A stretch of DNA of 62,955 bases, the filler included, from Basidiobolus meristosporus CBS 931.73 (lineage: Eukaryota; Fungi; Basidiobolomycota), in assembly GCA_002104905.1 (NCBI GenBank). It is 3 parts of 3 records of this genome, joined end to end, with 100 filler letters (N's around TTAATTAATTAA, not from the genome) between each part and the next. Parts side by side here need not be neighbours in the genome. Positions count along the whole stretch, not along the records: positions 45,683 to 62,955 come from MCFE01001096.1; 2 more parts are not named here. The stretch is one strand, 5' to 3'. The position numbers and the translations under genes were made by a program. Below, one piece after another: positions 1,134-62,955 of the stretch. Under the pieces are notes generated by a model, which saw nothing but the letters and a program-made list of their open reading frames with translations, had not been told where the DNA came from and made no database searches. The number at the start of each line of letters is the position of its first letter. Positions within the stretch are counted from its first letter, which is position 1.

Positions 1134-1482
1134 TGTTGTAAAAATTTGTACCTCCACCTAAATATTCACCTAACTTAGTCACTTTGATCATTTCCTTCAA
1201 ATCCTAGAGAATACCTACCAAATTCCTTGTTGGGATTTGCTTAGAATATTTTCACCAAAATGCCAGGTACCCAGAACATGAGAATTCTCAAAGTTGTCCA
1301 AACAGCCCCAAACTTTGCACAAATGTTCTTGGGACCTTGCTCAGCCTATTCTATATGTTTTTAATGCCAAGACCATGTAAAAGTATAAATACTACTTTTA
1401 AATTCAATAAGTAATTAAGTGAAAACCACATAATCTACTTGTCCTCCCAATCACTTCCAATATCTCCAAGACTCTTACAACA
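1134..1482 (+). repeat. Copia-1 5' LTR
   Basis: TG...CA ends, direct repeat of 5060-5408, followed by the PBS. Confidence 0.95.
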
Positions 1483-1513
1483 GGTTATGAGCCCCAAGCT
1501 GTCACTCTCTGCA

Positions 1514-4500
1514 ATGTCTACTTCTGCTATTACTGGAATTTTACCCTCTGCTGAAAAGTTGGATGGATCTAACTACCAGGTGAGAAGGTGAAGATGAAAA
1601 TGCTGCTACAAGAAAGAGACCTTTGGGATATTGTCATGGGAGAAAAATGCCCTCCTAAAAATGTGGGAGGGGAAGCCTTAAAGTACCAGAAGAAAGAACA
1701 AATTGCCTTTAACTGCATTTGCCTCAATGTTAAGGACAAATTGATAATTGAATGCTCAAGAGCAAATATGGCAAAGAATGCCTGGAAGGCATTAGAAAAC
1801 ACCTACCAGTCATGTTCAGCTGCTAAGAAAATGTATCTGAGACAAAAATTCTTTACTATGAAGATGCTGCCAGGATAAGAAATGAAGAATCTAATTCACA
1901 GAATTACCCTGCTGGTAGATGAAATGGAATCTTTGGGCATACCAACTACTGATGAGGATGTGATAGTTACCATCCTGAATAGCCTGACAGATGAGTTTCA
2001 GGGCCTGTATCAGCCCTAGAGTCCAGAACTGAAGATTTGATCTTATATTACACATATGGAAGGCTCCTGGATGAAGAATTAAGAATATCAAGCGCCAATA
2101 AAAAGGAAGAAAAAATGCTTTGATAAGCAATGATAGCCAGCAAAGGAGGTACCCAAGACCCTACAATGGCAACAACAATCTGTTTTGCAACTATTGCAAA
2201 AGGAAAAGACACACATTAGACTGGTGACTCAAAAAGAGATAATAAGCAAAAGAAGCCTGAATATGGAAATGCTGCAACAACTGAAGATAGACTATTCATA
2301 TTTGCACTCAAAATGACCACAAACACTTGATGCAGTGGCCAAAGGAACTATCCAAGTAAACCTTAGAAGCAGTGAAGGAAGCCATACACTCACCTTTAAA
2401 GAAGTACCCTGTGTACCAGAAATAGCCAAGAACCTACTATCTATAAGCAAGGCCACAGCAGAAGGACTCAGTTTCAGCTTTGACAATTCTGGATGCCAGA
2501 TCACTGATCAAAATGGTACCCATATTATGTTAAGTATCATACACCAAAATCTATACAAGTTGACTTACATTCCATCATATTTGAAAGCCAATATAAGTAA
2601 CTTAAATGAAGAAACACCAATGCTTTGGCACAGGATATTTGGGCACATCAATTTTGATTATTTGTGCAAAATGATCAAAGATCAGCTAATTTCTGGAGTG
2701 AAAATTGATCCCCCAGCTAATTGGAGCACTGTGAAGCCTGCATATATGAGAAACAAGCCAGACAACCGTTCAAGAGCTCTGGGTTAATTATAACTAAGAA
2801 AAATTGGATCTAATTCACTCAGATCTGTGTGGACCTATGCAAAATTTATCATTAGGTGGAATGAAGTATTTAATCACTTTTATTGATGACTATACAATAC
2901 ACATGTGAGACTACTTCATGGAGAGAAAGGAGGAAGCTCTGTCTAGGTTCAGGGAGTTTAAGCCATGGCAGAGAGAGAAACTGGTGAAAAAATCAAGAAA
3001 ATATGCTCTGACAATGGTTGAGCATATACCTCAAAACTCTTCATCCACTTCTGCAAAATTCATGGGATAAAGCAAGAGACTACTGTACCATACTCCCCAC
3101 AGCAAAATGGAGTAGCAGAACGTGCTCACAGATCAGTAACTCATATGGCAAAACCTATCATCCATGATCAAAAATTATTCTATGATGTTTAGGTGGAATC
3201 AATTGCTACAGCTGTACACCTTGAAAATAGGAGTTATAACAGAATACTTTGTGATTATACTCCATTTGAAGCATGGAATGGACGCAGACCAAGTGCAGAA
3301 CATCCAAGAACATTTGGGTGTACAATATATGCCAAGAAACTGCCCTCAAATCAGTCAAATTTGAGTCAAAAAGTGTAGATGCAAATGTTTGGGCTACCGC
3401 AATGAGAGTAAAGCATACAGACTCTACAATACCAAATCAAAGAAGCTAATCAAGTCCAGGGATGTGTTGTCTGATGAATATTCAAATTTTCACAAAAAAT
3501 GCCATCAGATGATGACAAAAATCTGATCTCAAGTCCACCAATTGTCAGGATTGAGTCAGTGCAAAACAATGAAAATATTTTGCTCCAGAGGACTCTACAG
3601 CCATGGTTTAGCCAGGATCAGTGCCCTGGAATATCCCAGATGTTATTATTCCAGTATCAAATGGCCAGAGATCCACTTGGAAAGAAATAGTTCAAATTGC
3701 TATATCAATGAGTGTACAAACTTAGCCTATGCCTATTCAGTCCATATTGATGAGCCCCAAACTGTAAAAGAGGCCCTAAATAGCCCTCAGACAAAGTTTT
3801 GGAGATATGCAAAGACTGATGAATATCAGGCCCTGATGGAAATTCAACTTGGACTTAGTCACATTACCAATCAACCAAAAATCAATTGGATGCAGATGGG
3901 TCTTCAAGACAAAATACAAGGCTGATGGTACAATTGAAAGATACAAAGCAAGACCTGTGGCCAAAGGATACTCTCAAACAAAGGAACCTGACTATACTGA
4001 GACCTTTGCACCAGTAGCCAAGTTTAATTCCATTGGATTAATATTGGCTATTGCAGTCAAATGGATGTAAAAACTGCATATTCAAATGGAACTTGATAAA
4101 GACTAGAAACATTGGAAGAGACTAAATCCAGCCTATCTAAGGAGTTCAAGATGTCTGATCTAGGAGAACTCAGTTACTACTTAGGGATAAAGTTCCCCAT
4201 AGACAGAGGTACCCAGACTACTGCCCTAAGCCAGTCCAAGTCCATTCAAGATATACCAAAGAAGTACAAAATGGAAGACTGTACACTGGCAGCTACCCTA
4301 ATGGAGACAAACCTCAACTTGGTCAAAACTTAATCAAATCAAGAGAACTTGGTGCCATCTGAAAGCCCCAACTTTCCTTATCAATCTATGGCTGGCAGTC
4401 TGATGTATATCATGCTTGCAACATGTCCAGATATCTCATATTCAGTGGGAGTTGTCAGCCAGCATAATCAGAACTATGGATCTGATCATATTGCAGCAGT

Positions 4501-5059
4501 TAAGAGGATTTTTAGATACCTGAAAGGAGCTGCTGATATCTACCTAAGATACACTTATAAGAACTCAGAACAGGATCTTGTGGGATACTCTTATGCCAAT
4601 TGGGCACAAAATTTGAAAGTCAGAAGATTCATCACAGGATACACCTTTCTTTACTGTAAAGGAGCAATTTCATGGAAATTAAGAAAGCATCCAACCGTAG
4701 CACTTTCTACCACAGAGGCAGAGTATATGGCAGCCTGTGAAGCTACAAAAGAAGCAATGTTGTTAAGAAAACTTTTTACAGATTTAGGCCTATGTCAAAA
4801 GTGCCTATTACTTTATTTCATGATAATCTAGGATGTACACAATTAAATAGAAATCCAACTTTCATGCTAGAACAAAGCACATAGATATTAGACATCATTT
4901 CATATGTGAACCTATAGAGAATAACTTGATTAGCTTAGTCTACTGTCCTACAGATGAGCTGATTGCAGACATATTTATCATACCATTATCTAGATACAAG
5001 TTTGAATATCTTGAGTCAAAATTAGGACTAGTGAGCATAATCATTTGGCTAAGTGGGAG
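1514..5059 (+). pseudogene. Copia-1 gag-pol pseudogene (stops, frameshifts, internal RT deletion)
   Basis: EKLDGSNY/LWDIV gag, LWHRIFGH pre-integrase, PYSPQQNGVAE integrase, IGCRWVFKTK...RYKARPVAKGY and YQSMAGSLMY RT, VALSTTEAEYMA RNase H; the RT jumps from MDVKTA to EETKSSLSKEF near 4070-4110. Confidence 0.9.
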
Positions 5060-5408
5060 TGTTGTAAAAATTTGTAATTCCACCTAAATATTCACCTAAC
5101 TTAGTCACTTAGATCATTACCCTCAAATCCTAGAGAATACTGACCCAATTCCTTGTTGGGATTTACTTGGAATATTTTCACCAAAATACCAGGTACCCAG
5201 AACATCAAAATTCTCAAAGTTGTCCAAACAGCCCCAAACTTTGAACACATGTTCTTGGGACCTTCCTTAACCTATTCTACATGTTTGTAGTGCCAAGACC
5301 ATGTAAAAGTATAAATACTACTTTTACATTCAATATATCATTAAGAGATATCCACATAATCTACTTGTCCTCCCAATCACTTCCAATATCTCCAAGACTT
5401 TTACAACA
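5060..5408 (+). repeat. Copia-1 3' LTR
   Basis: Direct repeat of 1134-1482, preceded by a purine-rich PPT. Confidence 0.95.
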
Positions 5409-45682: not shown

Positions 45683-45909
45683 ATATTTACTAAATATCTT
45701 AGAGTTTGATTTCATTGGCGACATTTCAAGAATGCTGATGTACATACTCCAACGGATCTAACAAAAATAAGTCACATTCTGGTGCAGGTTGATAAATATA
45801 GGCTACGAAGTTACCGGTTACTCTAAACACTTTAAATGCATCAAGTCATCGTGAAAACATGGTAGTAATTAGAAGTATCATGAGAATCTACTGCCATATC
45901 CTGATGTTT

Positions 45910-46020
45910 TGTTGTAAGAGTCTTGGAGATGTTGGAAGTAACTGGGAGAATAAGTAGATTCTGTAGTTTTCACTCAATGATTTATTGAATGTAATAGTAT
46001 TTATTGCATATTTCTGAATA
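45910..46020 (-). repeat. Copia-1 LTR 3'-end fragment
   Basis: TGTTGTAAGAGTCTTGGAGATGTTGGAAGT is close to the reverse complement of 1450-1482. Confidence 0.8.
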
Positions 46021-49000
46021 ATTATTGAAAAAGAGCCAGATTCATTCCAGTATTCCAATCATCAATCCCTCTAGGCCATCACATCTCTAGTAGAGAGCAA
46101 AGCATTCATGTTGATATCATGTATTTGATTTTGATGTTAATCATGAAAATCACGCATGAGAGGTGAGCCTCAAACCAGGTAAACAGGGCAAAACAGCACA
46201 AGTTGAGTATTCTATGCACTCCATCAGAACTATAAGGTGCTAATAATAGATCTTTGTTGTAGCAGCTCTGCTGAGGAATTCACTGCGCCCACTCAAGCGT
46301 ATTAAATTGAGAGCCTGTAATTAGTCCCCAGCTAAACATGACTGAGGGTGTTGGTACAATAGATGCCAAACCAAGATATATTCTATTGTCCTCAGCGATG
46401 ACAGATGGACCAGCACTCGTATGGCACTCTGGAAATGGATGTAACCTCAGTTTTGGCTTATGATCAGTGGGGGATAGATAACAAGAAGTGGTTTGCTCAC
46501 CGGGTATTTGTATCTAAAACAGCCATGCATCGGAAATCCTGTTCTCCTCGTACAATCATACGAGTATCAGCAAGAACAGTAAGTGTGCTGCTCACGGAAG
46601 CTTGGCCTACATGCAGAATATGTCAGCTTGATGTTAAATTCAGCGGCCTCAACCAGATTTAGCGGTGCAGATCTTCCTTCCTGGGCCATCTAATTAACTA
46701 TCTATTACCTCCTAGTCAATTGATGCAGCACAATTTTGTGCGGAATCCACCACTCTAGATGTGCCAAATCAATTTAGCAGGAGGGTCGTATAGTGAAATT
46801 TCGATGATCTCTCCATTGGAATAGCCCCAGGACATCTTACGAGTGAGTGGAGCCTCACGAGATCGTGATCAAGTAAATTCATAGTGTGAGTGGCAAAGCA
46901 CATCTAATAAGATATGCGGGGCCATATACTGGCGTACGGCAATTAGTACGGTCGTGGAAACGCTTCGAGATCACTACATCCGAATAAACCTGCACCACCC
47001 GCAGTGTCAGATCATATCTTTCCTCAGGGATTTCCTTGCTGTTCTCCGCTAGGCTAGCATTGGTATATTGGTGCTTACTGGCCGATATTCCCTGCCAATC
47101 TTACTAGTGATGCCAAGAACACGGGTATTTCCGTACTTTATGAGCGTGGGCACTACTTGCAAGCAAGAGTGACCAGATCTTTCAGTTGTATTACCAAGTC
47201 ACCGAGCTCCATCATTTGGGAATGGGGCGTCCAATGGCTCACCCAAATTACCTTGCATGTTTTCTAATTTTCAGCCAGTCCAATCTGGTGAGAAAGGGGC
47301 TGATGTGAAGTTTCACTAAATTAGTGTTAACCTTGTATCATAGACCAGATATGCTCCTTATCTACTCATTGATCTAGGTTTTCTGGAGGATCATGGTTTG
47401 CTGGATTGGTGTTGAGACTCCAGCAATCACCTTGCACCGCCCAAAAGAATGAGGAATCAAAGTGGCTTATCCTATGACAAATCATCACAATAATATGAAA
47501 AGCTGATGGGATGATGGAAATCATGGTCTTTTGACTAGTGCGCCGTATTACTAAATTCAGAGGTATGCTCTTGAGCAAGAGACACGAGGTGAGGCTGGTA
47601 CGGGAACACTTTATCGTAGGGGACATGGCGTTGATTCAAAATCTGTACGCCTGCTGAATGGAAAAGGAAATATTGATGAGAAAACGATAACTTGTGAAGA
47701 GCCTTACAAGGTCGGGTTTTTCCAGTTTTCGTTTAATATTGACACTCTACTACAGGAATCGAATCAGCCCGATGAAAATATGGCACGGGACTGACTGAGC
47801 TAGTCTAATTTGGACAATGTGTTACCATACTTGCCACTCATCCGAGGTCATCTGCAACCCCATGTTTCATGCAACTCTTGGCTACTTAAGTGCGAGAAGT
47901 AGATCCAGCATTATACAAGGACGGCCGTCAGCCATAAATCAGCAATTCCCGGCATCATTGGTCGTGACGAAAAGGGGGAATATAGGAGTATTGAGGGGGG
48001 TGTGCAGTTGGAAGGTCATTCGGACTTGACTTACCAAACATCAATGACAGGCAACAGATGGTTACTGCTTTCAACGTATTGCTTGCGATGTCAGTGGTCG
48101 ACCAGATTAGTTGGGTGTGATTATTTCCGGTTCACCCAACATTGCCCGCTCTTCCCATGGACCAAATCTCGCCAAATCATCGCTGTTTGAAGATTGTACT
48201 ATGATACAATGGGGCAATTCCTTCGCACACTGCGGTTACACTGATGGCTGTATCCCATACTCGAGAACTCCGGATCCAGCCTCCAGCCGCTAAATGCATT
48301 AGCTTATCTATTGCAAGGGACAGAGAGATTGGTAGTAGAATACAAAACAGTATTATACCGGGATACCTATCAGATTTAGCAAAGCGATCATCTAAAGCGG
48401 CAGATTGGATAGATGGATGTCATCAGAAGGCACTTTTTACATATATGAGAGATGATCAAACGACAGGTTTACTAGCCTAATTTTGAATGCGCCAGCATCA
48501 AGCTCAGGAATATTGCTCGGGAAACAGGGTGCGATTGACATATTGAGGGCTAAGGCAGCCCAAGTGGCGTGGCATTATGGACATCCGAATCTTGCCTTGA
48601 TCGATTTGGTGCGGATAGAGCAATCGCCGTTCATGAGCTGATAGCGGCCCATGCACACCAGGGCAAGACTCACTTAGCCAAGCATCTACAACGTATGTGC
48701 TGCAATACGTTGACTGTTCTCAAACCCCCATTATCTCGTCTTAATTAATACTGGCAACAATAAGAGAGATGAGCCAATAAGATACAAGCGTTCCAAACGG
48801 TAACTGACTGGTATTGTATTGTACATAATCTACGCACAGAACTCACCAAAATGAGAGCCTTGGAAGTTTCCCATTCAGCGTCCGTAGGCCAAGTGAACTG
48901 CTTTTAAAAGCGGTGAAATTGTCGACTTATGAGGTATATTAAACTGGGGGCGACTTCATATCCTATTCGATTGCAGCATAGAATACTTTTCAAATAATGG

Positions 49001-49333
49001 AACCCCTTGACCGTCGCCATGATTAGAAAGATTTACTACCAAAACTAACGGTGGTGTTATCAGCCTTTATTGATGATATTCCTAGTTGCACATATAGTCA
49101 GAAAGGCTTGATTGGTGTGATAGGTGCATCCAATCAGTTTCCACTGAGCATTTGCTTGAGCGGGGAGAAATAAAAGGCCCAGAGGTGACAACGAAGACCT
49201 CATTCAGTTCTAGTCAACCGGTGTGGATAATTCCCTGCAGCAGCCTGACTCCAGAGTTCGTGAAAACAGTAGTGAATCAGCGCTGACCCATTCGAACACT
49301 CCTGTTTATTTTGCATCCAGCCACTCTATCCTG

Positions 49334-49882
49334 ATGAACTTCATTACACACACCCTCTTCGGCCACAAAAAAATACGAAACATGCCCCAGAGCGTGGTTT
49401 CTCCCTATGCCGACATCAAGCCTTCCCAAGCCATGGTGATGACATGCCCTATCTCGGACACCAACTCCTCGGAGCCCGCTCCTGAGGGAACCATCCTTGA
49501 TATCCTGGGAGAAGAGAGAGTTGAGAGAATTGTCGAAAGATTCTACCATTACAATCTCACAGATAAGAACACCAAGCTCTTCTTCCAAGGCATCAATGTA
49601 GAGCGGCTGCAGCGGATGCAGACACGGTTTCTAATACACCTGCTAGGAGGCAAAGCCATCAACACTCGCAAGATGAGGGCTGCCCATAAACGCCTGCTCG
49701 ACCTCAATGATGGGCACTTCGATGCGGTGTTGAACAACCTGAAGAAGGCAGTGAAAGATATGGGGATCAGCCGGGATTTGACACAAAGGATTATGGCCGC
49801 GGCAGAGACCACCAGAGATGATGTCTTGGGCCGGACACCACTCCCCAAGCATCAGCCAGTGGACGACTTAGACTTTGTTTGA
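49334..49882 (+). CDS. Group I (trHbN-like) 2/2 truncated hemoglobin with N-terminal extension, 182 aa, intronless
   Basis: B9-B10 Phe-Tyr (RFY), CD1 Phe (KLFF), E helix RLQRMQTRFL..LLGG, F8 His (MRAAH), LNDGHFDAV, TRDDVL; the first ATG at 49334 is in frame with the ORF-track call. Confidence 0.92.
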   Translation: MNFITHTLFGHKKIRNMPQSVVSPYADIKPSQAMVMTCPISDTNSSEPAPEGTILDILGEERVERIVERFYHYNLTDKNTKLFFQGINVERLQRMQTRFLIHLLGGKAINTRKMRAAHKRLLDLNDGHFDAVLNNLKKAVKDMGISRDLTQRIMAAAETTRDDVLGRTPLPKHQPVDDLDFV

Positions 49883-51099
49883 GGATGATCTCCGCAACAC
49901 CCAAGTGCACGTTTCCATTCAGAATCACGTCTTGTTGCCAACAGCATATCTGCTGATCCAACTGCCCGAAGACTACCAACCTCCCCCCAAAAAAATCCCT
50001 TTTCGTACCATCTATTAATCTAATTTCCTGAATCAGTGTGCTTCCCGATATGCGCCCGACACCCGCCCATCTACTTCAACTCCGCTTCGAGAAGCTCGAG
50101 GAGACTGTTCTCTGGAGACCCTCTGGATTTCTTCCGGAGCCCCATGGCATCACGTCCACACCTCTCCCTTCCACGAGTTTTGGCATTTATTCTATCCCCT
50201 CTCCTGTACAAAACATTCTCGAGGACTCATGTGCAGTGTTACATGGCACATGAGCAATGTCCCTTTCATCCTCTCACCCGCAGGATACTAGTCTTATTTT
50301 GGTACTCCCAGTGAAGCTCTTATGATTAAAAAGCATAGGAGATATTGGTTTTCCATGTTGAGTTCAGAGCCAGATTCCTACAGTCCCAGCGTCAACGGGA
50401 CTCAGCGGTGGAATGCGTTCCCCGATTGAGAAGAGCCATTGTTGCAGAGCAAAATAGCCAGGCTGAATGGCATGGGAGACTTCACCTAAATCAGTAGATG
50501 AGGTCACAGTCTCGTGTTCAATGAAGACCTTCAACACATGGGGCAGCGTTACCAAACTACATCAAGGGAATACTCCCCATTTGTTCGATTCCCACCTAGG
50601 CATGAGATCGCCAATGCTAACGTGTGTTGTCGTGATTCTGAATATGGAAATCCCATTACGTGCTTAGCACATTTGGAGGCATAGCATATAAGGTCTGGTC
50701 AAGATGACAACGTTGGCCCGTAGTAGAGAATCACTGGTGGGGGCAATTTCCTAATCCAGTCAACACTGTATATTGCGGAATCTAAAGCATCACCCTTATT
50801 CATTCGAGATGCTCATGTTGCAACACATCCTCTCAGAATTGACATATCATCTCTCAGCGGCGTTACTCGCCATCAATGGTGGGCAATGTTGTGGTGCACT
50901 CAACCACGATGTATCCAACACCTTCGGCCCAGTGTCTGACAACAAAGATGGTAAGTGATCTGAAGGGCATCGTACGTTTCACTAGAGACCTTTTTTTGGA
51001 AATCCGGTTAGCGACCTGTTGCCTAATCACACGTGTTGAGCTCTTAATGGGAAAATCTCCGACACTACTGTTACTTGTTGGGTTTGGTTGGAATTACAA

Positions 51100-51260
51100 T
51101 TAGATTTTGTGGCTTGCACTCAATGATTTACTGAATATAAAAATAGTATCTGTTGCAAGATTCTAGGGAGTATTGGAAGTCATTTGGAGAGCTACAAGAA
51201 TTGCATAATATTCACTTGCTGTTGTATTGAGCTCAAATATAATACCTATACTCTAAGAAG
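51100..51260 (-). repeat. Scrambled Copia-1-like LTR fragments
   Basis: Pieces such as CACTCAATGATTTACTGAATATAAAAATAGTAT and GAGTATTGGAAGTCATTTGG resemble the LTR-1 reverse complement. Confidence 0.55.
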
Positions 51261-51404
51261 AACTTTGTAAAACCAATAGGGATAATGCTCTAGGAGAGGT
51301 TGTAGAAAGCTGCGTGTAAAGTTTGGGGGCTTTTGAATAAGCTTGATGATATGGATAATTCCCAGGCCTTTACTAACACTATGAGTTAACTGACATCTTG
51401 GAAA

Positions 51405-51753
51405 TGCTGTAAGAGTTTTGGGGATATTGGAAGTGATTGGCAGAACAAGTAGATTATGTGGTTTTCACTTAATGATTTGTTGAATGTAAAAGTAGTATTT
51501 ATTCTTTTCCATGATCTTGGCAGAACAAACGCGTAGAATAGGGTAAGGAAGGTCCCAAAAGCATGTGTTCAAAGTGTGGGGTTGTTTGGACAACTCTAAG
51601 AAATTTTATGTTCCGGGTACCCGATGTTTTGGTGAAAATATTCCAAGTAAATCCCGACAAGAGATTTGGTCAGAATTTATTAAGATTTGTAGGTGGTGAT
51701 ATAAGTGACTAAGTTAGGTGAATAGTTGGGTGCAATTAAAAATTTTTACAACA
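51405..51753 (-). repeat. Copia-1 solo LTR, CpG-retaining
   Basis: Full-length colinear match to the reverse complement of 1134-1482 and 5060-5408; flanks GGAAA/GGGAA (5-bp TSD with one mismatch). Confidence 0.92.
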
Positions 51754-52039
51754 GGGAAAACAATTCATAACTTAGCAGTAAACTAAGTAGAAACTATCAT
51801 TAATGAGTAGTTTAGGTATAAACCAAATATTTTCACCATAATTTTACCAATGCTAGGCCTTAATAGAAGCATATGTTGAGTGTGTGTTCTAATCATATTC
51901 TTAGTAGCAACTGACTTAACTCACTACCAATGTTTGCCTCTTAAGTCTCTTTGTAGCTAAATAGTACCTTCTGTGCCTTTGTTTAAGTTTTGGCTCTTGA
52001 GCAATGAGTTGGTGGTATTGTTCTGAGAGTATTGAAGAT

Positions 52040-52215
52040 ATTGGAATATTTCACATATGCTCTTGGGACCCTACTAGATATATTCTGCATGCTTGTTTTG
52101 CAAGGCCATGTAAAAGTATAAATACCACTTTTACATTTGAAAAATCATCAAGTTAAAGCTACATAATATACATGTTCCCCAATTCACTTGCAATATCTCC
52201 GAAACTCTTACGACA
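52040..52215 (+). repeat. Copia-1 LTR 3' portion, inverted relative to 51405-51753
   Basis: CCATGTAAAAGTATAAATAC...CAATATCTCCGAAACTCTTACGACA. Confidence 0.8.
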
Positions 52216-52554
52216 TGTATTACAAGCTCTTGTAAAAGTGTAGACATAACTTTTGGATCCCATAAATTATCAAGTGAAAACCACAAATAATCACTCACAA
52301 CATTACTGAAATCTTTACAACATGATGTTCATTAATATTTTCCACTTATCACCATTGGTTGCCAGTAATCATAGTGTTGTGGAACATCGGGATATGGATC
52401 ACTTTCTTGGGAAATACATACATCCACATTCAAGAGGCCTCAGTTATGATTTGCAACATGCTAATCTATTATATAATGAAGTCTCTATTGATCTATGTTT
52501 GTATGGAAAGTTGACTGAATTAACACTAGTTACACAGGAAACGAAGTTGTGATT

Positions 52555-53247
52555 TCAGGGACCAGTATAGACTGAACTACCTTTGGAAGATTGTCTAACT
52601 GCCACCTTTAACTCTGGGTTATTCTTTAATAATTGTGATATATATTTCCCTTGAATAAGAGTGAAGCCGATTCCAAGAAATACCAAGGGACGGTGCCGCT
52701 TTAGCGTGATTAAAGGTAGCAAAGCTTCATCCGTAATGCCCGTACAAACAAATAAAGAAATCCAGGTCACTTTGAGACATCTAGATAGTAGCGTCGAGAT
52801 GCCTCTGTCCGTAAGGTTGAAGCAGTTGTATAGGTCAACTCTGGTGATATTAGGACAATTTTGGGCAATGGTTATGATCATGGAATCGGTGATCATCTCT
52901 TTTCTTCTCACTTGAGAAAGATCAAGCGTTTGCATCAGCACTCCGTACTCCCTAGCTGAGAAATAATCTTCAAAAGTGCGGAAAATATGATATCTCTCTA
53001 AAGCACCGGGCTTCGTTGCCAGGATTGCCGATAATGCCTTACGCCACAGACCACGTATTCTTCGTCGCCTGGTTTGATTTAAGGTATAGACAAGGTAACC
53101 CAAATGCCGGCCCGTCGCTGGTTTGGGATGTGACCATATTAAGGGAGTGGTATGTTCATTCCACTGCTTTGAAATAAACAAACAACAATATTGCTCCTGC
53201 GGTGTAAGATACTCGAAAATATTTGCTATTATATCGTGAGTTAACAT
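52555..53247 (-). CDS. F-box plus leucine-rich-repeat (FBXL/GRR1-like) protein, 230 aa
   Basis: N-terminal F-box (DIIANIFEYL..QEQYCCLFISKQW...PLIW) and cysteine-type LRRs (ITDSMIITIAQNCPNITRVDLYNCFNLTDRGI); the C-terminus could include an unrecognised intron. Confidence 0.85.
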   Translation of the reverse strand: MLTHDIIANIFEYLTPQEQYCCLFISKQWNEHTTPLIWSHPKPATGRHLGYLVYTLNQTRRRRIRGLWRKALSAILATKPGALERYHIFRTFEDYFSAREYGVLMQTLDLSQVRRKEMITDSMIITIAQNCPNITRVDLYNCFNLTDRGISTLLSRCLKVTWISLFVCTGITDEALLPLITLKRHRPLVFLGIGFTLIQGKYISQLLKNNPELKVAVRQSSKGSSVYTGP

Positions 53248-55451
53248 CTATTGAGTCAGGTATCAATTTAGAGGAACCCCTCACTTCCCCAGTGATTCAT
53301 TCACAACAACAAATAGTTACAACCATTGCCACATAACTGGATCACATGATCCCCAGCTAGCCATAAAGGACCTGATCTCATCGGGGTAGAAATACTCAGT
53401 GATATTGACCATCCAAATCGGACTAGACCAGAACCTATTCCATGCATAACAGCTGGGATAAACAATGCCACCAGGTCTGGCGCTGGAGACTGGCGGCTAT
53501 ATTGATGCTGTACAAATCGAAGGTGAAATAGAATGGTTGGACAAATATCCCAAACCCGCTCTCAAGAGGAACAATGGGGTGCGCAACAGGTGTTGAGTGA
53601 GGTAAATAAGGTTAAAAGATTAATGTGAGTACATCAGATCAGATTGAACCTCTAGTAAACAGAAATGTGGACCTTACCAAGATGCGTAAGTTCGTTGTCT
53701 CATTGATTTATTTGTTAGAAAATCGGAGACCTCGGAGCCCGATCTTGTCCTAACTGCTGTGAGTCTCGCCGCTACATCAGCTGGTTGGATACAGTCGACC
53801 ACCTGAGCAACCTGTCTGTTTCCTTGCCCCTGAATCCACTACGGAGGCATGGGCGAAGTATCTGATAAAGTGGCGATTTGGAACAATCTCACTGCAGAAC
53901 AACAATACACTGGCTAGTTTGGAGCCCGTAAGCAGCATGAATTGATTCTGAGTAGGAAACCAAATTCGAAGAGATTCGAAAATGCTCAATCCGAGATTAT
54001 CATGAAGCAATCTAGGAGGTGATACTGTCCTACACCTGGATAATATATGCCGACTACTCCCTTGCTGCTTGGGACATTCTGATCTAATGGAAGTACCAAA
54101 AGAAATCATTCCAAAATGAAAAATGAGGAAGCAATGACACAAGCCTGGTTATTTTTAGTACTGATTATCACGGTTTTGATGGGAATTCTGTGTTTCTATC
54201 GTCTGCAATCCCTGCAAATATCAGTTGCGGTTGCCGCAGACCACTGCCCTCTAGCCCTTGAGGGCACTCCTAATTAGCGTCCCTTCGCGGATAGATTATT
54301 GAGCCAGTGCTGATTAGATCTCTACCATATTAGCTGGTGCGCACCCTGTCGAGTGGCTACCCAACGCTGGTGAGGTTCGGCCCATAGCTGGCTTCTCCGC
54401 GGTTGCTAAGGATTTGTGGGGTAAATATAATCAATTAGGCCCAGATGTAGTATCTCTGGTTGCGGCTGTGTAAGCAATCATTCCGGTAGGTTACATCTCA
54501 GCCATAATTAGAGATTAGATGATGCCTTTGTTCATGATTTGTCAATCAGCCAAACTTGGGAGGGGATAGCATATTTTCCCGGATTGAAGCACACTCCCGA
54601 GATTAATCGAGGATTACGGGGATTAGCGCTTCTAATTTCGCTTCTTTGGAGTCACAAATGGGTTGATTATAGAAAGAATCCGCCACCTCTTGCCAATTCT
54701 CACCTTGAGAATGTCCTTGTACGCTGTGCAGAGTGAGAAACAGTTAGCCTCCATTAGTCGAGGCACATATTTGGATGGCCACTAAAGCTTAGACATATAT
54801 ATGAGGTACAGCATATCACTACACCAAATCCATCTCCCATACAGCCCAAGGTAACCTCTGTAAAGGGACCAGATCGACGTTGGGTTCCACCAGCACCTGA
54901 AATGAAAGTGGATAAATCTAACTTAAAATTGCTTAGCCTGCAACTAATGTAACGGATGGTAGTGGAAATCCAAACCGTTCAGGATTACTTTGAATCAGAG
55001 GCAGTGCAACCTTCCCAAACTTCCTGGTCGAAGCAGCGAGGGGACGCGATTGGCTCGAGCATATTGGTCATGTCAGCATCATCGCTAGGGAGATTCTGAG
55101 TCAGTAGGGTAGAGATGCGTGCGTGCGTACCTCCAGGAGTATTTTGAAATAGTCTCCAGCCAAGATTTGGGGATGGTGGTGTCAAATAACCTAGGTTTCA
55201 CTAAACTAGTCATCGGTGGCAGAAGATGGAAGATAATCGCTCTTTGATTTGGATATATATTTCCTCTGCAACGAGCGTAGCTGCTTAGTCTTCGATTGCA
55301 ACATCAGGTTGTCCATACCACGGCTTGGGCTTTGGGCTGCCGTAAGATCCCTTTGCATCACCTTCCCCAAGACTTTCTGACAAGATCCTGCAAGAAAAGC
55401 ACCTTATCAAAACCCTTCACGTAGTGCAGTTTACTCCCTTTAACATTTATC

Positions 55452-56562
55452 ATGACAGTTCAGATGGATATCGAGAGAGGGGCTGATATGGAGGTACAGT
55501 ACGTACAGCCAGTAGAACAGAATATTCAACAGCCGATGCTAAAATTCGCTCAACCTGTGGCCTCAGTTCTAAACATAGACGGCCCAAGCGGGGCTGAGAT
55601 TAAGGACAGTCTGCTGGTCACAACAGTGGAGCCGCAATCGCACCATGGTTGGAGTCGATTGGAAACCGCTAGAAATCAAGTTTGCGCCGAGTTTATTGGT
55701 ACATTCTTGTTGATGTTCTTCTCCTACGCCGGCAACGCCCAGAGCATCCTCTATCAGTCGCAGTTTTCGATTTTGGCCGCCCCCTTGGGTTTGGCGGCGG
55801 GGTTGTACGTCAGTGGTGGAGTTTCGGTAAGATATTTCCGCCTGATTACAATGGATAACCTGGCAAGGACCCAGATTAAGAATTCCGATTATTGACATGC
55901 GTTTCTTGGTTTAAAGGGTGGACATCTAAACCCCGCGATCACCATTTCTTTCGCAATTCACCGCAAATTCCCGTGGCGGAAGGTTCCTCGTTACATCGGT
56001 GCTCAAGTACTGGGTGCATTCTGTGCAGCTCTGTTCGCATTCTTGTATTACTGGCCGGATATCAACCATTTCGACCAAGGGCTTCACCGAGTCACTGGTG
56101 AATTCGCCACCTCAGGAATTTTCGCCTACAACCCCCCTAGTTACCGCAGTAATCTGGCGGGGTTCTTCAGAGAAGTGATCAATGACCTGGTATTTTTGCT
56201 GGGAATCTACGGAATTACCGATGTGAAAAATGGCCAAGCTAATGGCTATGTAGTTCTTGGCGTATCCTTCCATTTCCTGGCGGTATTGGTCTGTTTCGGT
56301 AAGGAAATTTATTTGGCAGCTGGAATGGGTTCCTCGGAGTAGAACTAACTGTGCTCCAATAGGGGGAAATGCTATTAATCCTGCTGGCGATTTTTGTGGC
56401 AGAGCTGTGGCTGCCATGGTCGGTTATGGATCAGAAGTATTCTCCGCAAATAGCTATTACTTCTGGATAACCTTAATTGGTCCCTTTTTGGGAGCGTCTC
56501 TTGGAGGATTGTTCTACCGTCTGTTCATTCATCCCAAAGCCGAGAGCGTTGTGATGAAATAG
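55452..56562 (+). CDS. MIP-family channel, aquaglyceroporin-like, divergent; exons 55452-55826, 55917-56298, 56363-56562 (318 aa)
   Basis: AEFIGTF, SGGHLNPAITI, YIGAQVLGAF, AINPAGDF, YFWITLIGPFLGASLGG; GT-AG introns 55827-55916 and 56299-56362 (CTAAC branch point) restore one open frame. Confidence 0.92.
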
Positions 56563-57758
56563 CTGGCATGGCTGGAAGGATAGTCGGCAAGCCTCCAGAC
56601 TTTCTCGTCGAGCACTTGATCAGAACTACCAACCACTTACCTTCAACACCACACTTTTTGCCAATCTATGCAAATGCATCTTTCACACCTATTTCAACGT
56701 TGACAATCAGCGAAGAAATGTTGATATACTCTGAGGTATACGCCTGTGCCAAAACCCATCCTATCCACCCAATATTCCCATTTAGTATAAAGTGTTGAAT
56801 TTAACAAGTCTTACCTTCGGAACCTGGCTTCGCACCAGCACTGATTGCTCCTTAACTACATAGTGACACCTCATGAGCTGTAATTATATGATTTATAAAC
56901 TAGAATCGTCAATAAACCACCTTTCGGTTGATTTTGCTGCATACAGCTATGTCCAAGTGACTCATTGATGCGTAAAATCTGGGTGGCAAGGGCCGGGGAT
57001 ACGCCCAGTCTCTTAGGATTTTGTTGTTACATCATGGCAATGAAGTCATGGAACCATGACGTCTCTATTTCTGGTGAGTATCTGGGCTTAGGATGGTGTA
57101 TCTATGCCCTGATTAGGATTCAATCCAAGGGTAATATTGGGGGTTCTGGGGATTGACTGATATTCGTGGAAATCTCATTTGCAGTACTGATTGACCGAGC
57201 GGATCTTGATCAGAAATGTGAATCGTAGCCCCCATTTTTGGACATGCTTACATGTTTGTATTTCGATGGTTAAATAAAACAAAGTTGATTAGTGAGTTAA
57301 CAAATGCTCCCCTACATTGATCGAATTCTGGAGCGCAGCAGATTCGATCATTGAGGCACTAGATCAATTTCAATCTGCGATTTCCTTGGCTCACGTACAT
57401 CGTGTTATCAGGAGATTATTGATGTTGATAAGTTACCGATTCTCACCAATGCCATCCTATCGATTACGAATTCATGCCTAAGAACTAAGGATGAGCCAAT
57501 AGTGGGCGAAGGGTTGCCGGATGGATTCCGGATCGGAGAGCTCCAGAAATATACTATCGAAGTATCTATCTTGAACCTTCCACTGGTAGTGGAATTTTCT
57601 ATCCACTTATATTGGCTCCCACTTGCAAGTGATCTAGGCACTGCAGCCTGTTGGCAAGTCACATTCAATCATACTGCCAGGAATCAACATTTTTCAACTA
57701 TTTATCTTCACCTTGGCCTGTTTCTTTCTTCTTTATCGTCTGTTCATCGTTAGTTATC

Positions 57759-58866
57759 ATGACTCAGTTATCCAAACCCGTAATCCCTATCACAGTCTTC
57801 ACTGGCTTCTTGGGCTCTGGCAAGACCACCATTATTCTATCCCTGCTCAACCGAGTCAATCCTGGTTACAAGATCGCTGTACTAAAAAATGAGTTCGGTG
57901 ACGTTGAAGTAGATAGCGAGCTTGTCAAAGAGAGCAATGTGGCGGTTCAAGAGATGCTTAACGGTTGTATGTGTTGTGTTCTCGTTGGACAGATGAAGCT
58001 TGCCCTGATGGAGCTTCAAGGTACTGTCGTCACTTATTTATTGAAGTTCTGCACTGGTTTTTAACTTGTCTTCTATTCCCTTAGAAAAATATAGCCCAGA
58101 TCGTATCATTGTGGAGACTAGTGGCTCTGCTTTCCCTGCTCCCATTGCTTGGCAGATCAGAGAGATGGCTGACGATGGTTTTGTTTTGGATTCCATCATT
58201 ACTGTGGTTGATTGCGTGAACTTCACTGGATACGAAGACACCAGTTATACTGCCAAGATGCAAGCTCAATATACTGATCTGATCCTTCTGAACAAGCATG
58301 AATTGGTTGATGATCGTCAGCTTGATGTAGTAATAGATCACATCAATGAGCTTAACACTGACACCCCCAAGGTCAAATGCGAAGGAAAGACTGGTGTTCC
58401 TCCTGAGGTTATGTTTGGCATTGACACCAAGCTCTTCCAATTGGATGCCAAGAATGAAGGCCAGGCTTTTGATCAAGATCATCATCATAACGAGATTGAT
58501 ATTGTTCAAGTGATCCGCATGGACGACAGCGAAGATCTTAGTGGCCCTGTGCTAGAGAAGAAGGCCTTTGAAAGCTTCCTTGCCAGTTTGCCCAAGGATG
58601 AGATCTACCGAGTCAAGGGATTGATTAAGCTTGAGGAGACTAAAGATGGAAAGACCACCAAGCAGCTCTATATTCTTAACCATGCATTCGGACGTTCCTC
58701 CTTTACCGCTGTCGAACGTGATATCTCTCAAGATCTGGAAAAGCAAAAGATTTTAATCAAGATGACTGTCATGGGACAAGGGCTTCCAATCTATGTCAAA
58801 CGATTCAAGGAAGGTTTCCAAGTGACAGATGAACATGTCACTACCCATCTTAAGGGCCATCATTGA
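57759..58866 (+). CDS. COG0523/CobW-family (G3E) P-loop GTPase, putative zinc metallochaperone; exons 57759-58020 and 58085-58866 (347 aa)
   Basis: Walker A GFLGSGKTT, NEFG, GCMCC metal motif, IIVETSG, LLNKHE, His cluster DHHHNE, C-terminal IYRVKG; intron 58021-58084 is GT-AG. Confidence 0.93.
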
Positions 58867-59618
58867 TGACTTGAGTATAATTCTGTAAAAACCTGGTAAC
58901 CCGGCTACTTAATACTTTTTGATTAGACTTTTAGAGAACTGTTTTCTTAGGAATCATATTATATATCACTTTCTCTTGACATAATAAAGAAATGGATCTA
59001 TTTCAGGAATTTCGCTGGTTTGTGAACGGTTAAGCGTTTGGTAAAATATGGGTTTCTGGTCGGATGTTGTAATGTGATGTTTAGATCAAACGGTGGAGTA
59101 GGCGTGGTAATCAATCGATTGTGTAGGTGGTAACAGTAGCAATTTTAATCATGAGATGAGTTCAACTCTAGGTTCTGTTACATTTGGTCTTGAAATATCA
59201 AGGAAGGGGAGGAAGAGGGATTCGCCGATACCAACACCATACGGAGGTGGCACTCGCTAAAAGTGGGGTTCAAAAAAGATACGCCTGTATTGGTATAAGA
59301 ATGTTTGCCACGAATATCTCATCATATACATCGCATGGAAGTCAATCGATTATTAGAATATTTGATGGGAGCGAGCCGGGAAAGCCGGGATGCATATTGG
59401 TGATTGTTGAAATATAGAAGAAAGTTGTATATAAAGCAAGTCTATCTACAGAGGATAAATGGTCGGCCACAAGCCTAACCCTATCTATAAAAGAGACCAA
59501 AATGGAATACAACGGTGAACTCCGCCCTAGAAATAATGAAACAAAGTCAGCTCATAGCGCCATTCCACTCCATTCGAATTAGGGAATGTACGAAGATTGG
59601 AGTCACCAACAACCCAAA

Positions 59619-60701
59619 TCATTGGCTCCTGCTGTCATCAGGCAAGTAGGATTCGCTTGGGTACGAATCGTAGCGCGCGTGTGGCAACGGGTTTGCTACC
59701 AGATCAGGATACATGGAAGAGTGCAACCATGAGTCTTCCTCGAGTAGCCATTTGAAATCAAATCCGGTAGTGTCCGGTGCAGGAATGGGTGGGGAGATGT
59801 AATCGTCTTCAGAAATACTGGAATAGTCGTTCACAGCCATGCTTCCTACGCCATGTTTCTTTTTCTTCGACTGGGGAAGGTATGAGCTATTGGGATCATC
59901 AGTGCTCTCATAGCAGGAGTAAAATGGAGCAGGCTTGCTGGTGGGTGGATATGGGAAGTATTGATAAGGAGTAGTGGAGGGGGCGTAGTATGTCTTCAAG
60001 TGGTCGAAGTTTTGTAATTTCGAGGGAGGGCCTTCTAGTGCGGAATCCAGTTCAGAGATGGGAGATTGTTTCCGCTTGGTCTTCGTCCTGTTAGGACTAT
60101 ACTTGTAATCAGGATACTTCTGCTGATGGTCGAGTTTGATCTGCTCAGCCATCCATTGGTATTTGCTCTTTTCCTCAGCCGAGATGTTTTTCCACATTTT
60201 GCCGATTATTCGAGACACTTCCATGTTGGTAATGCCTGGGTTGGATGCGAAGATTTCCGACTGCTTTTCACGACGAAATAGAAAGAAACAGTTTGCTGGT
60301 CGTGGAATTTTGGTTTTCTTCGATTCGGTGGTGGGTTCATCCAGCTCTAGTGTGTCCGAGTTGCTAGAGGGAGAGTCGACGGTGCTGTCTGATGCTAAGG
60401 TCATGAATTGATGCTGGGGCGAATGGATCAGCGCTGGATAGTGGGCGTAGAATGGGTCATGAGGAGTGTGGTGTGACGGTTGCGGATGATAGTAAGCATC
60501 CGGACGAATATATGGATTTGGATACACGCCGAAGTGCGCATTCTCTGACAGGGAAGGATGATACTGGGGTTGAGTATACATGTGGGTGGGGTGTTGCGTT
60601 TGGACATTGGGTGTACCTATGTCGTTTGAAGTGCGGTTGTTGGTGGGGCAGACGTGGTGAGGAGTGGTCTTCATGAATGATGTCTCAGATAATAGTTTCA
60701 A
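59619..60701 (-). CDS. HMG-box transcription factor (MATA/SOX-type box), 360 aa
   Basis: KIPRPANCFFLFR...EVSRIIGKMWKNISAEEKSKYQWMAEQIKLDHQQKYPDYKYSP, flanked by low-complexity His/Pro/Ser/Tyr regions. Confidence 0.92.
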   Translation of the reverse strand: MKLLSETSFMKTTPHHVCPTNNRTSNDIGTPNVQTQHPTHMYTQPQYHPSLSENAHFGVYPNPYIRPDAYYHPQPSHHTPHDPFYAHYPALIHSPQHQFMTLASDSTVDSPSSNSDTLELDEPTTESKKTKIPRPANCFFLFRREKQSEIFASNPGITNMEVSRIIGKMWKNISAEEKSKYQWMAEQIKLDHQQKYPDYKYSPNRTKTKRKQSPISELDSALEGPPSKLQNFDHLKTYYAPSTTPYQYFPYPPTSKPAPFYSCYESTDDPNSSYLPQSKKKKHGVGSMAVNDYSSISEDDYISPPIPAPDTTGFDFKWLLEEDSWLHSSMYPDLVANPLPHARYDSYPSESYLPDDSRSQ

Positions 60702-62493
60702 GATAAAAGGCCGTCGGGAAGGTGCTGAGGTACGGAGACAGATTCACTGGAAACACAAGAGTGCAAAAAGAATATAGCTAGAACCGGTCAGCTCTGGATA
60801 CCTTTTATAAAACGGAGCTTGCGCACTGAATCGGAAAATTGATCATTGGGTTTCTTGCCGATGCCTGAATTAGTCCGTACGCAACGATCAACTAAGGTTC
60901 GTTCGCGTTTTTGGATGGATCTTACACCCAGGCAGGATACCTTCGGAAGCGGTGCCATTGAAAAATCCTCGCCTACTGCTTGGGATTCGTTTTATTGCCC
61001 GATACTGTATGTTGACCTAGTTTGTCGGGCTTATGTACGTGTACATTGGAGTTACTTAATTGGTAGGTCTTAAACGACCGATCAATCATGGTTTGTGTGC
61101 TCTGGACTGGACCAACTCGCAGGATACAATGGCTTGACCCATGCTTGATGGGAACTTACAAACATCTCTACTACCTGTTTGTAAGTGGTATTTGTAGTTG
61201 CGAAGGTGCGTTCAGTATGAATAACACAGTTGTTGGCGTCAGCTAAGTCTATAGCCTACAACGCAGTTTTTCGGGATCCACAAGGTTTCTAGAGTACCAC
61301 CCATATGCATTGGCATCATTGAGTAACGGCGCTCATAGCTGAGTAGTGAAAGCATTTGTTCAAAGCGTACATCAATTCATCCTCAGGTCTGTTAACAAAT
61401 GCCGACCAGTACAGGGGTAGTAGTGATCAATAGGCGTGTTTAGATTTCTGCCACAGAAATGGCCGATACATGTCATCGCTGCGAAACATACACTAAATAT
61501 ACAACGCAAGGTATCACTGTGTGGCAATAAATCGCTGCAAGGATGCTAAGATCGGAGAGATCATTGCTCCGATTGTGCTTGCTCGAGTAGTCAGCCAGCA
61601 TAAGTCAATACTGCCTGACAGGCTAGTCCCAAAAAGGACTAATTGTGAATCTCAACCAATGTTCAGTTTTGCAAAGTAGCTTTGGTCACTTGCGCAGTAC
61701 TCGCAGGGCATCACCTGCGGATTGCCACTGCTGTGATTTGAATGAAAGCATGCTTAGAGAGCCATGCGGATCTCAATAGATGAGCGTTTGCAGCTCACTA
61801 TGCCGTAGAACTTGCATTTCTCGTGCAATTTAAAGATCGTTACCACAATAGAAGCAAGCCTATATATAAGTACCGAACTAGTTGTATGCGAGAATCAGCA
61901 ACTACTGCCTTGGTTTGCCATGTTCCTCAGCGGGATCAGTATTTTCTCCTAAGAGTTGTAAATCAGTGAGGATCCTTGACATGGATAGATGGATCCGAAT
62001 CCTCGGGAAAATCTCGAGTTGAGCTTGGAGTTTTCTGCCTCCCTGTGAAGGAAGAAACAATTTGAATCAAGCACCTATTGAAGTCATCCCGCCAAGAGAA
62101 CCAATAGGTGAAGTTAGATGTATTTAACAGCTGTAGCCAGACTTATATACATATTCAGGCGTTCTATTAAAATGGAGATCCTATTTTGTTATCCTTAGCT
62201 GCCTGTAGGTGGTTCTACTGATCCTGTATGTATGATGATATAGCAGGCCCTTACCACTTATTCCAACTCTAATCTGAATTGATGTACATTTCCTCAATGA
62301 TTAAGATTATCTCTGCTCAAGCTTTTATTCTCCTGTTAAGTTTGTTGATCAATATTCAAGCACGCCTAGACAAGTAGTACCAATGCGCATGAGAGAAGCA
62401 CTTTGCGAAATTTAACTGAGTTACATGCTAGCTCATAGGGTCAGTATAAGCCACCAGTGTCAGCATCCATTAGCTGAAATGTTCAGTCATACC

Positions 62494-62955
62494 TTATCGT
62501 GGGGGTTTGACCACTACCACTGGGCAGTGGACTGAGTGCACCAGAAAGTCACAGAAGCTCCCTAACCAAAGCCTACAAATTTCCTATTAGATTCATTCTA
62601 ACACAATCTTGTTGGCAAGCTTGCCTTTTCCAATGGCTAAGGTCGCGATTTCCGATTAGAAGAACATCTGCTTTAACTGCCTCAATATGGTCTGAGAGGC
62701 ATTTTCTTGTATCGGTCTGGGAGGTCAGAAGTTTGATTTCATATGGAATCTGTAAATCAATAGACATTTAAATTTAACTCCGCTTTAACAAGTCCCCCGA
62801 ATAGCAACCAAGTGGATTTTACCTTGGCGTTTCTGAGAATGTCAGTTTGCTTGTCAAGCTTGTCCAACAATTCCTTCTTCGCCTGAATAATTTGTTTACT
62901 TGAATATTTCTCTGTCGTGGTTCTGTTTCGTTAGATTTACATACCTCTTTTTGTA
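62494..62955 (-). CDS. Universal stress protein (USP-A-like), 3' part only; exons >62955-62945, 62882-62823, 62749-62625, 62572-62494
   Basis: Spliced product ...AKKELLDKLDKQTDILRNAK-IPYEIKLL...KADVLLIGNRDLSHWKR-LWLGSFCDFLVHSVHCPVVVVKPPR* matches the USP C-terminal signature; the last intron has a GC donor. Confidence 0.85.

Follow-up and report, generated by a model that had tools for sequence, protein, structure and literature searches.

A solo LTR with five CpGs in a CpG-poor repeat nest of Basidiobolus meristosporus: probably a young copy rather than one protected by neighbouring genes

RIP, as described for Neurospora and other Ascomycota, erodes repeats by C-to-T transitions and thereby depletes CpA and enriches TpA. 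The decay of methylated CpG (5mC) in repeats is known from Alu and L1 in vertebrates, from Basidiomycota with CpG methylation restricted to transposable elements, and from the repeats of Phycomyces and Linderina, two fungi for which 5mC confined to repeats at CpG is reported (PMC11258239). Basidiobolomycota, on the other hand, are reported to be rich in 6mA (PMC11258239), and 5mC is scarce in most early-diverging fungi according to reviews. No methylome for Basidiobolus meristosporus, and no measurement of 5mC in Basidiobolus, came up in a literature search. The proteins listed for B. meristosporus include DNMT1 (ORX99839), UHRF1 (ORX90637), two Dim2-like proteins, two DNMT2, a class II CDCA7-like protein (CDCA7F) and two HELLS, while DNMT3, DNMT5 and DNMT4/RID were undetected (PMC10538959 source data).

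The repeat-derived DNA described below resembles the systems of 5mC decay in that the loss is specific for CpG and restricted to repeats, that TpG and CpA are in surplus while GpC is normal, that older copies are more depleted, and that DNMT1 and UHRF1 occur in the genome. It differs from them in that the case is drawn from sequence composition and concerns a lineage described as rich in 6mA (PMC11258239). A solo LTR within this DNA still carries five CpGs. A previous sequence-only reading had explained these by context: repeats in clusters would be methylated and erased at CpG, and isolated copies near genes would escape. Here we compare the solo LTR with its relatives at the same locus and in B. 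ranarum.

Anatomy of the solo LTR and its repeat nest

Within the window (the whole stretch of 62,955 nucleotides), the analysis covered positions 45683-62955, which are the entire scaffold MCFE01001096.1 (17273 bp) of B. meristosporus CBS 931.73 (GCA_002104905.1). The unit at 51405-51753 on the plus strand (349 bp; hereafter BmA) starts with TG and ends with CA, and its termini form an 8-nt terminal inverted repeat (TGCTGTAA/TTACAACA, complementary at seven of the eight positions). A target-site duplication can be read directly on both sides, as GGAAA on the left (51400-51404) and, within 51754-51759 on the right, either as GGGAA (51754-51758, four of five bases identical) or, with a shift by one base, as GGAAA (51755-51759, all five identical). 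Neither a primer-binding site nor a polypurine tract or coding sequence adjoins BmA, no ORF of more than 76 aa is present within 50900-52554, and internal retrotransposon sequence was not found on the scaffold. The family is dispersed and multi-copy, with five to six further fragments on the B. meristosporus scaffold and four copies on contig L002 of B. ranarum. We conclude with good confidence that 51405-51753 is a genuine solo LTR, as had been claimed from the sequence; the TG..CA ends, the terminal inverted repeat, the 5-bp duplication and the relatives in B. ranarum all speak for it. The copy is not brand new, because its 5' end reads TGCTG for TGTTG and its duplication is imperfect. A near-palindrome, CCGGGTACCCGA at 51609-51623, is centred on GGTACC and spans two of the CpGs of BmA; no significance was established for it.

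BmA is located in an AT-rich, CpG-poor repeat nest of about 1.3 kb (51056-52340; GC 0.34). The nest has nine CpGs, five of them in the solo LTR, and houses no fewer than four older fragments of this LTR family. On the plus strand these are BmE (51078-51154; LTR positions about 23-99, 77% identity) and the 5'-anchored BmD (51151-51345; LTR positions 1 to about 190, about 62% identity by BLAST and alignment). On the minus strand, BmC is the 5' part of an LTR copy (52049-52215; LTR positions 5-164, 77.5% identity by BLAST), whose region forms a 116-nt inverted repeat with 51404-51519, and BmF (52223-52322) is a second 5' fragment with the terminus TGTTGTAAAG in the alignment. Another 5' fragment on the plus strand, BmB (45910-46005; LTR positions 1-99, 85% identity), lies near the scaffold edge. 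Given these five relatives on the scaffold, the earlier description of BmA as isolated has to be given up. The remnant at 52040-52215 had also been noticed before, as a plus-strand 3' end; the ending TTACGACA reported for it is present at 52208-52215, but the remnant is instead the minus-strand 5' part just described. The two readings look alike because the ends of the LTR are inverted repeats.

All fragments from BmB to BmF retain the 5' terminus of the LTR but break off somewhere between about 100 and 190 in LTR coordinates, and the 3' half occurs only in BmA. Such 5'-only fragments could have arisen because nesting or deletion favoured certain points, or could stem from a related but shorter element. 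An insertion of BmA inside BmD, with the remainder of BmD to its right, was also considered; the test was not significant (z <=1.4).

BmA shares with solo LTRs of the Ty1/copia or Ty3/gypsy type a unit of about 340 bp, TG..CA ends, a short terminal inverted repeat, a 5-bp target-site duplication, the absence of adjoining internal sequence, the presence of many copies, and nested insertions; as between Copia and Gypsy, the family is known here from LTRs alone, on a scaffold without the coding part. Unlike usual solo LTRs, the local fragments of the family are all anchored at the 5' terminus. BmA itself is an ordinary retrotransposon remnant.

Neighbouring genes and the B. ranarum counterpart

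The solo LTR lies in a 2.7-kb tail-to-tail spacer between two convergent genes, both of which point with their 3' ends toward the nest. The left neighbour is a truncated-globin gene (49439-49882, plus strand; Pfam Bac_globin, gene call), and the right neighbour is an F-box/LRR gene of 230 aa (52555-53247, minus strand; Pfam F-box-like). Farther to the right, an aquaporin gene (55452-56562, plus strand), a cobW gene (57651-58866, plus strand) and an HMG-box gene (59619-60701, minus strand) were recognised in the scaffold. Coding potential is absent from the nest and from 45683-49222. Within the latter, some 3.1 kb (46101-49222) are of normal composition (GC 0.44, CpG observed/expected 0.66); their ORFs do not exceed 95 codons, and neither gene calls nor ORFs with a Pfam domain occur in them.

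Some of the gene models deserve comment. The F-box ORF is complete and has an annotated ortholog in B. ranarum (P0121, 235 aa, 64% identity); it is missing from the gene calls of MCFE01001096.1 despite this ortholog and is therefore probably an unannotated gene. An exact look-up of the ORF gave no match, and a homology search with the protein returned matches in B. ranarum only and no other homolog. The HMG-box gene was called at 83 aa in an ORF that reaches about 360 aa, and its B. ranarum ortholog (L002 10775-11839) encodes 354 aa in one exon; the B. meristosporus model is probably truncated. The homology search with the HMG-box protein returned B. ranarum proteins only. On a second B. ranarum contig (L003 10001-13041), a paralog of the HMG-box gene (P0122, 56% identity) is located beside a paralog of the truncated-globin gene, the latter with 77% DNA identity to the globin gene at 49439-49882. 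This arrangement suggests an old segmental duplication of the globin-HMG neighbourhood.

Contig L002 of B. ranarum carries orthologs of the F-box, aquaporin, cobW and HMG genes, and the LTR copies are found downstream of the F-box gene there as well. One of them (BrA, L002 1697-2033) is a 337-bp unit, TGTTAAAG...TTTCAACA, flanked by a perfect 5-bp duplication (GAGTT/GAGTT), and a second full copy is present at L002 746-1073. At the contig's beginning, a 3' LTR part (L002 1-163) abuts a minus-strand 5' part (164-317), which represents a nested insertion. Over the first 195 nt of the LTR, the two species share 71% identity. No copy of the family was present in 30 kb of B. ranarum DNA from two further contigs, and a scan of metagenomes with the conserved LTR pattern gave 0 matches.

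The LTR family thus forms a nest downstream of the F-box gene in each of the two species (51056-52340; L002 1-2100). Orthology of BmA and the B. ranarum insertions was considered and not borne out, as the alignment of the flanks was not significant against shuffles (z <=1.0). Since the duplications of BmA and BrA differ and their flanks cannot be aligned above chance, the two are treated as independent insertions. This suggests that the F-box spacer either holds an old nest that is still drawing new copies or is subject to a local insertion preference, and the spacer may be a long-lived insertion hotspot. In neither species were tRNA genes or Rfam families found near the nest; there is therefore no sign of targeting of the Pol III type.

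CpG composition, age of the copies and direction of change

The CpGs of BmA had been correctly located by the sequence-only reading: they occur at 51530 and 51532 (CGCG), 51614, 51622 and 51655, and nowhere else within 51405-51753. With five CpGs observed and 9.2 expected, the ratio is 0.54, whereas the rest of the B. meristosporus nest reaches 4/25.9 (0.15). The non-repeat intergenic DNA of the scaffold is at 169/255.6 (0.66), which is also the scaffold mean. BmA is thus not above the mean of its own scaffold. A closely similar distribution was observed on the B. ranarum contig, with 4/7.9 (0.51) in the solo LTR flanked by a target-site duplication, 7/46.3 (0.15) in the rest of the nest and 0.71 in the non-repeat intergenic DNA. 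The rest of the nest differs from intergenic DNA in both species (p=5e-4 for B. meristosporus, p=4e-7 for B. ranarum); for the solo LTR against the rest of the nest, where the CpG counts behind the test are tiny, p is 0.06 per species; combining the two by Fisher's method gives 0.025, and pooling over both gives 0.007.

The erosion concerns CpG in particular. CpG observed/expected ratios of 0.15-0.24 in the nests stand against a GpC ratio of about 1.0, and in the nests of both species TpG and CpA taken together are raised (1.14-1.4) and TpA is below one (0.89-0.96). The signature of RIP, an excess of TpA with a deficit of CpA and TpG, is absent from the dinucleotide counts of the nest: RIP depletes CpA and enriches TpA, whereas in the Basidiobolus nest TpG and CpA are raised and TpA is not. 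The older fragments located 60-500 bp from BmA in the same spacer have ratios of 0.13-0.19, the lowest on the scaffold, and 400-nt windows with a ratio below 0.3 are found nearly exclusively on the scaffold's two LTR-bearing stretches. These counts support the view that repeat-derived DNA is eroded here specifically at CpG and in a manner unlike RIP.

With respect to age, BmA stands out among the copies. In a maximum-likelihood tree of 170 columns from the 5' part, the copies of the two species separate with a support of 100/99, and in each species the solo LTR flanked by a target-site duplication has the shortest terminal branch (0.032 for BmA against 0.20-0.44; 0.045 for BrA against 0.083-0.22), these lengths resting on 100-170 aligned columns of a star-like, poorly resolved tree. 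After removal of all CpG-associated columns, a star-tree fit placed BmA at 0.08 and the other local copies at 0.18-0.43, and no other B. meristosporus copy was as close to any of the B. ranarum copies. Over the two analyses, the terminal branch of BmD measured 0.42-0.43. The sample behind these values consists of one full copy and five fragments for B. meristosporus, and each copy was identified through its similarity to BmA. Within this local sample, BmA is least diverged at non-CpG sites too, an outcome that the sequence-only reading had itself named as refuting its proposal that context preserved the CpGs.

The direction of change at the CpG sites was read from the alignment with the B. ranarum copies, and it is not uniform. 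At 51530, CG is also present in two B. ranarum copies, with CA or TA in the others; by this distribution, the CpG is ancestral and has been lost repeatedly. Likewise, 51655 (CCCGA) aligns with TTCCGA in two B. ranarum copies and is ancestral. At 51532, CG occurs in BmA only, and all five other copies, three from B. ranarum among them, read TG and none reads CA; this CpG was probably derived rather than retained. BmA is also the only copy with CG at 51614, where the alignment is less secure and the B. ranarum copies read TG, TG and TT, so that 51532 and 51614 may both be derived singletons. For 51622, the alignment provides no reliable counterpart. In BmC, the CpG at 52211 within TTACGACA lies at the terminus, which reads TGTCGTAA on the strand of the copy; three B. 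meristosporus copies have TGTTG there and B. ranarum has TGTTA, and the 3' inverted repeat of BmA implies TGTTGTAA where BmC reads TGTCGTAA. As judged from this comparison, the CpG at 52211 is clearly a gain and not a retention. Over all copies, 13 alignment positions carry CpG in any copy, mostly as singletons against TG or CA in all others. The direction of such singletons may not be assumed, because loss of CpG would produce this pattern and so would ordinary T-to-C changes at the abundant TpG. Of the claim that the CpGs were retained, the part concerning 51530 and 51655 is borne out by the B. ranarum copies, and the part concerning TTACGACA, and probably 51532, has to be reversed, these CpGs being derived.

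A young copy versus protection by gene context

Taken together, we consider BmA to be, probably, a dead solo LTR that has kept CpGs as the youngest copy in a CpG-decayed nest and not through protection by genes. An LTR retrotransposon of a family shared within Basidiobolus would have inserted, with formation of a 5-bp target duplication, into an already existing small nest of older fragments of its own family, where the globin and F-box genes face each other tail to tail, and recombination between its two LTRs would later have left one of them. Repeat-derived DNA in the B. meristosporus genome would lose CpG over time, the likely cause being deamination of 5-methylcytosine maintained by DNMT1. 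That BmA still has five CpGs would be explained by its being the most recent and least diverged copy; its CpG content would still be near the starting level of the family, which equals the genomic background, and some of its CpGs are perhaps new, having arisen by T-to-C changes at TpG.

Three alternatives have to be weighed against this young-copy explanation. The unit at 51405-51753 might be no LTR at all and belong instead to a different kind of short interspersed repeat, such as a non-autonomous element with a fixed end. This would fit the fact that all five other B. meristosporus fragments share one terminus, the other half being known only from BmA, as well as the absence of internal retrotransposon sequence from the scaffold. 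We regard it as very improbable in view of the termini (TG..CA, with a short inverted repeat), the 5-bp duplications found in both species and perfect in B. ranarum, the full-length copies of 328-337 bp in B. ranarum, and the insertion of a plus-strand into a minus-strand copy in L002 at 163/164, a nesting typical of LTR elements. The differences in CpG might also be differences between subfamilies, inherited from master copies, together with new CpGs formed by T-to-C or A-to-G changes at TpG or CpA, rather than the outcome of differential decay after insertion. The prevalence of singletons among the 13 CpG positions, the TG (never CA) opposite 51532 in every other copy, the TG, TG and TT opposite 51614 in B. 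ranarum, and the gained CpG at 52211 in TGTCGTAA all point in this direction. Against it, the mixture of CG, CA and TA at 51530 is what independent decay from an ancestral CpG would be expected to leave, and the near-absence of CpG from the non-LTR DNA of the nest would be left unexplained. As a full account it is possible, though doubtful; it is compatible with the young-copy explanation and partly contained in it.

The remaining alternative is the one proposed before, in which repeats in large clusters are CpG-methylated and deaminated and isolated copies in gene-rich DNA stay unmethylated and keep their CpGs. It gains some credit from the CpG content of BmA, which exceeds that of the surrounding repeat DNA (0.54 against 0.15), from the two ancestral CpGs that BmA has in common with B. 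ranarum copies (51530 and 51655), from the TG or CA that the sequence-only reading gives at these sites in cluster copies, and from the DNMT1-type system listed for B. meristosporus (PMC10538959). Yet CpG is scarcest (0.13-0.19) in the fragments that share the gene-flanked spacer with BmA at distances of 60-500 bp, and the nest of B. ranarum (0.15) behaves likewise; gene-proximal repeats do not keep CpG irrespective of their age. BmA is moreover not isolated, its CpG content equals the background and is not elevated, and it is least diverged at non-CpG sites too. As to the full-length element (1134-5408), both LTRs of an inserting element derive from a single template. The TG or CA states that the sequence-only reading gives for both of its LTRs most simply predate that insertion and are therefore uninformative on the element's present surroundings. 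We consider protection by context improbable: CpG is eroded in a spacer flanked by genes, and therefore gene-rich surroundings do not protect, so that gene proximity has no demonstrable part in the CpG content of BmA. What stands of the earlier model is the erosion of repeats specifically at CpG and unlike RIP; the escape near genes does not, as the old fragments next to the genes are the most CpG-poor.

A further-reaching interpretation, which we think unlikely, is that in this lineage, regarded as poor in 5mC and rich in 6mA, CpG methylation of repeats would be strong enough to erase CpGs even in intergenic nests of kilobase size and would lag on fresh single insertions, so that BmA would now be unmethylated. 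Separately, the LTR family would have gone on inserting beside the orthologous F-box gene in both species, at a long-lived integration hotspot. More generally, a comparison of CpG and TpG among repeat copies needs an outgroup and a control for age before 'retention' can be read from it. In two Basidiobolus species, CpG is about four-fold scarcer in repeat-derived than in neighbouring non-repeat DNA, and the signature is not that of RIP. This depletion suggests that transposons are, or once were, methylated at CpG in a fungal lineage in which 5mC has hardly been studied.
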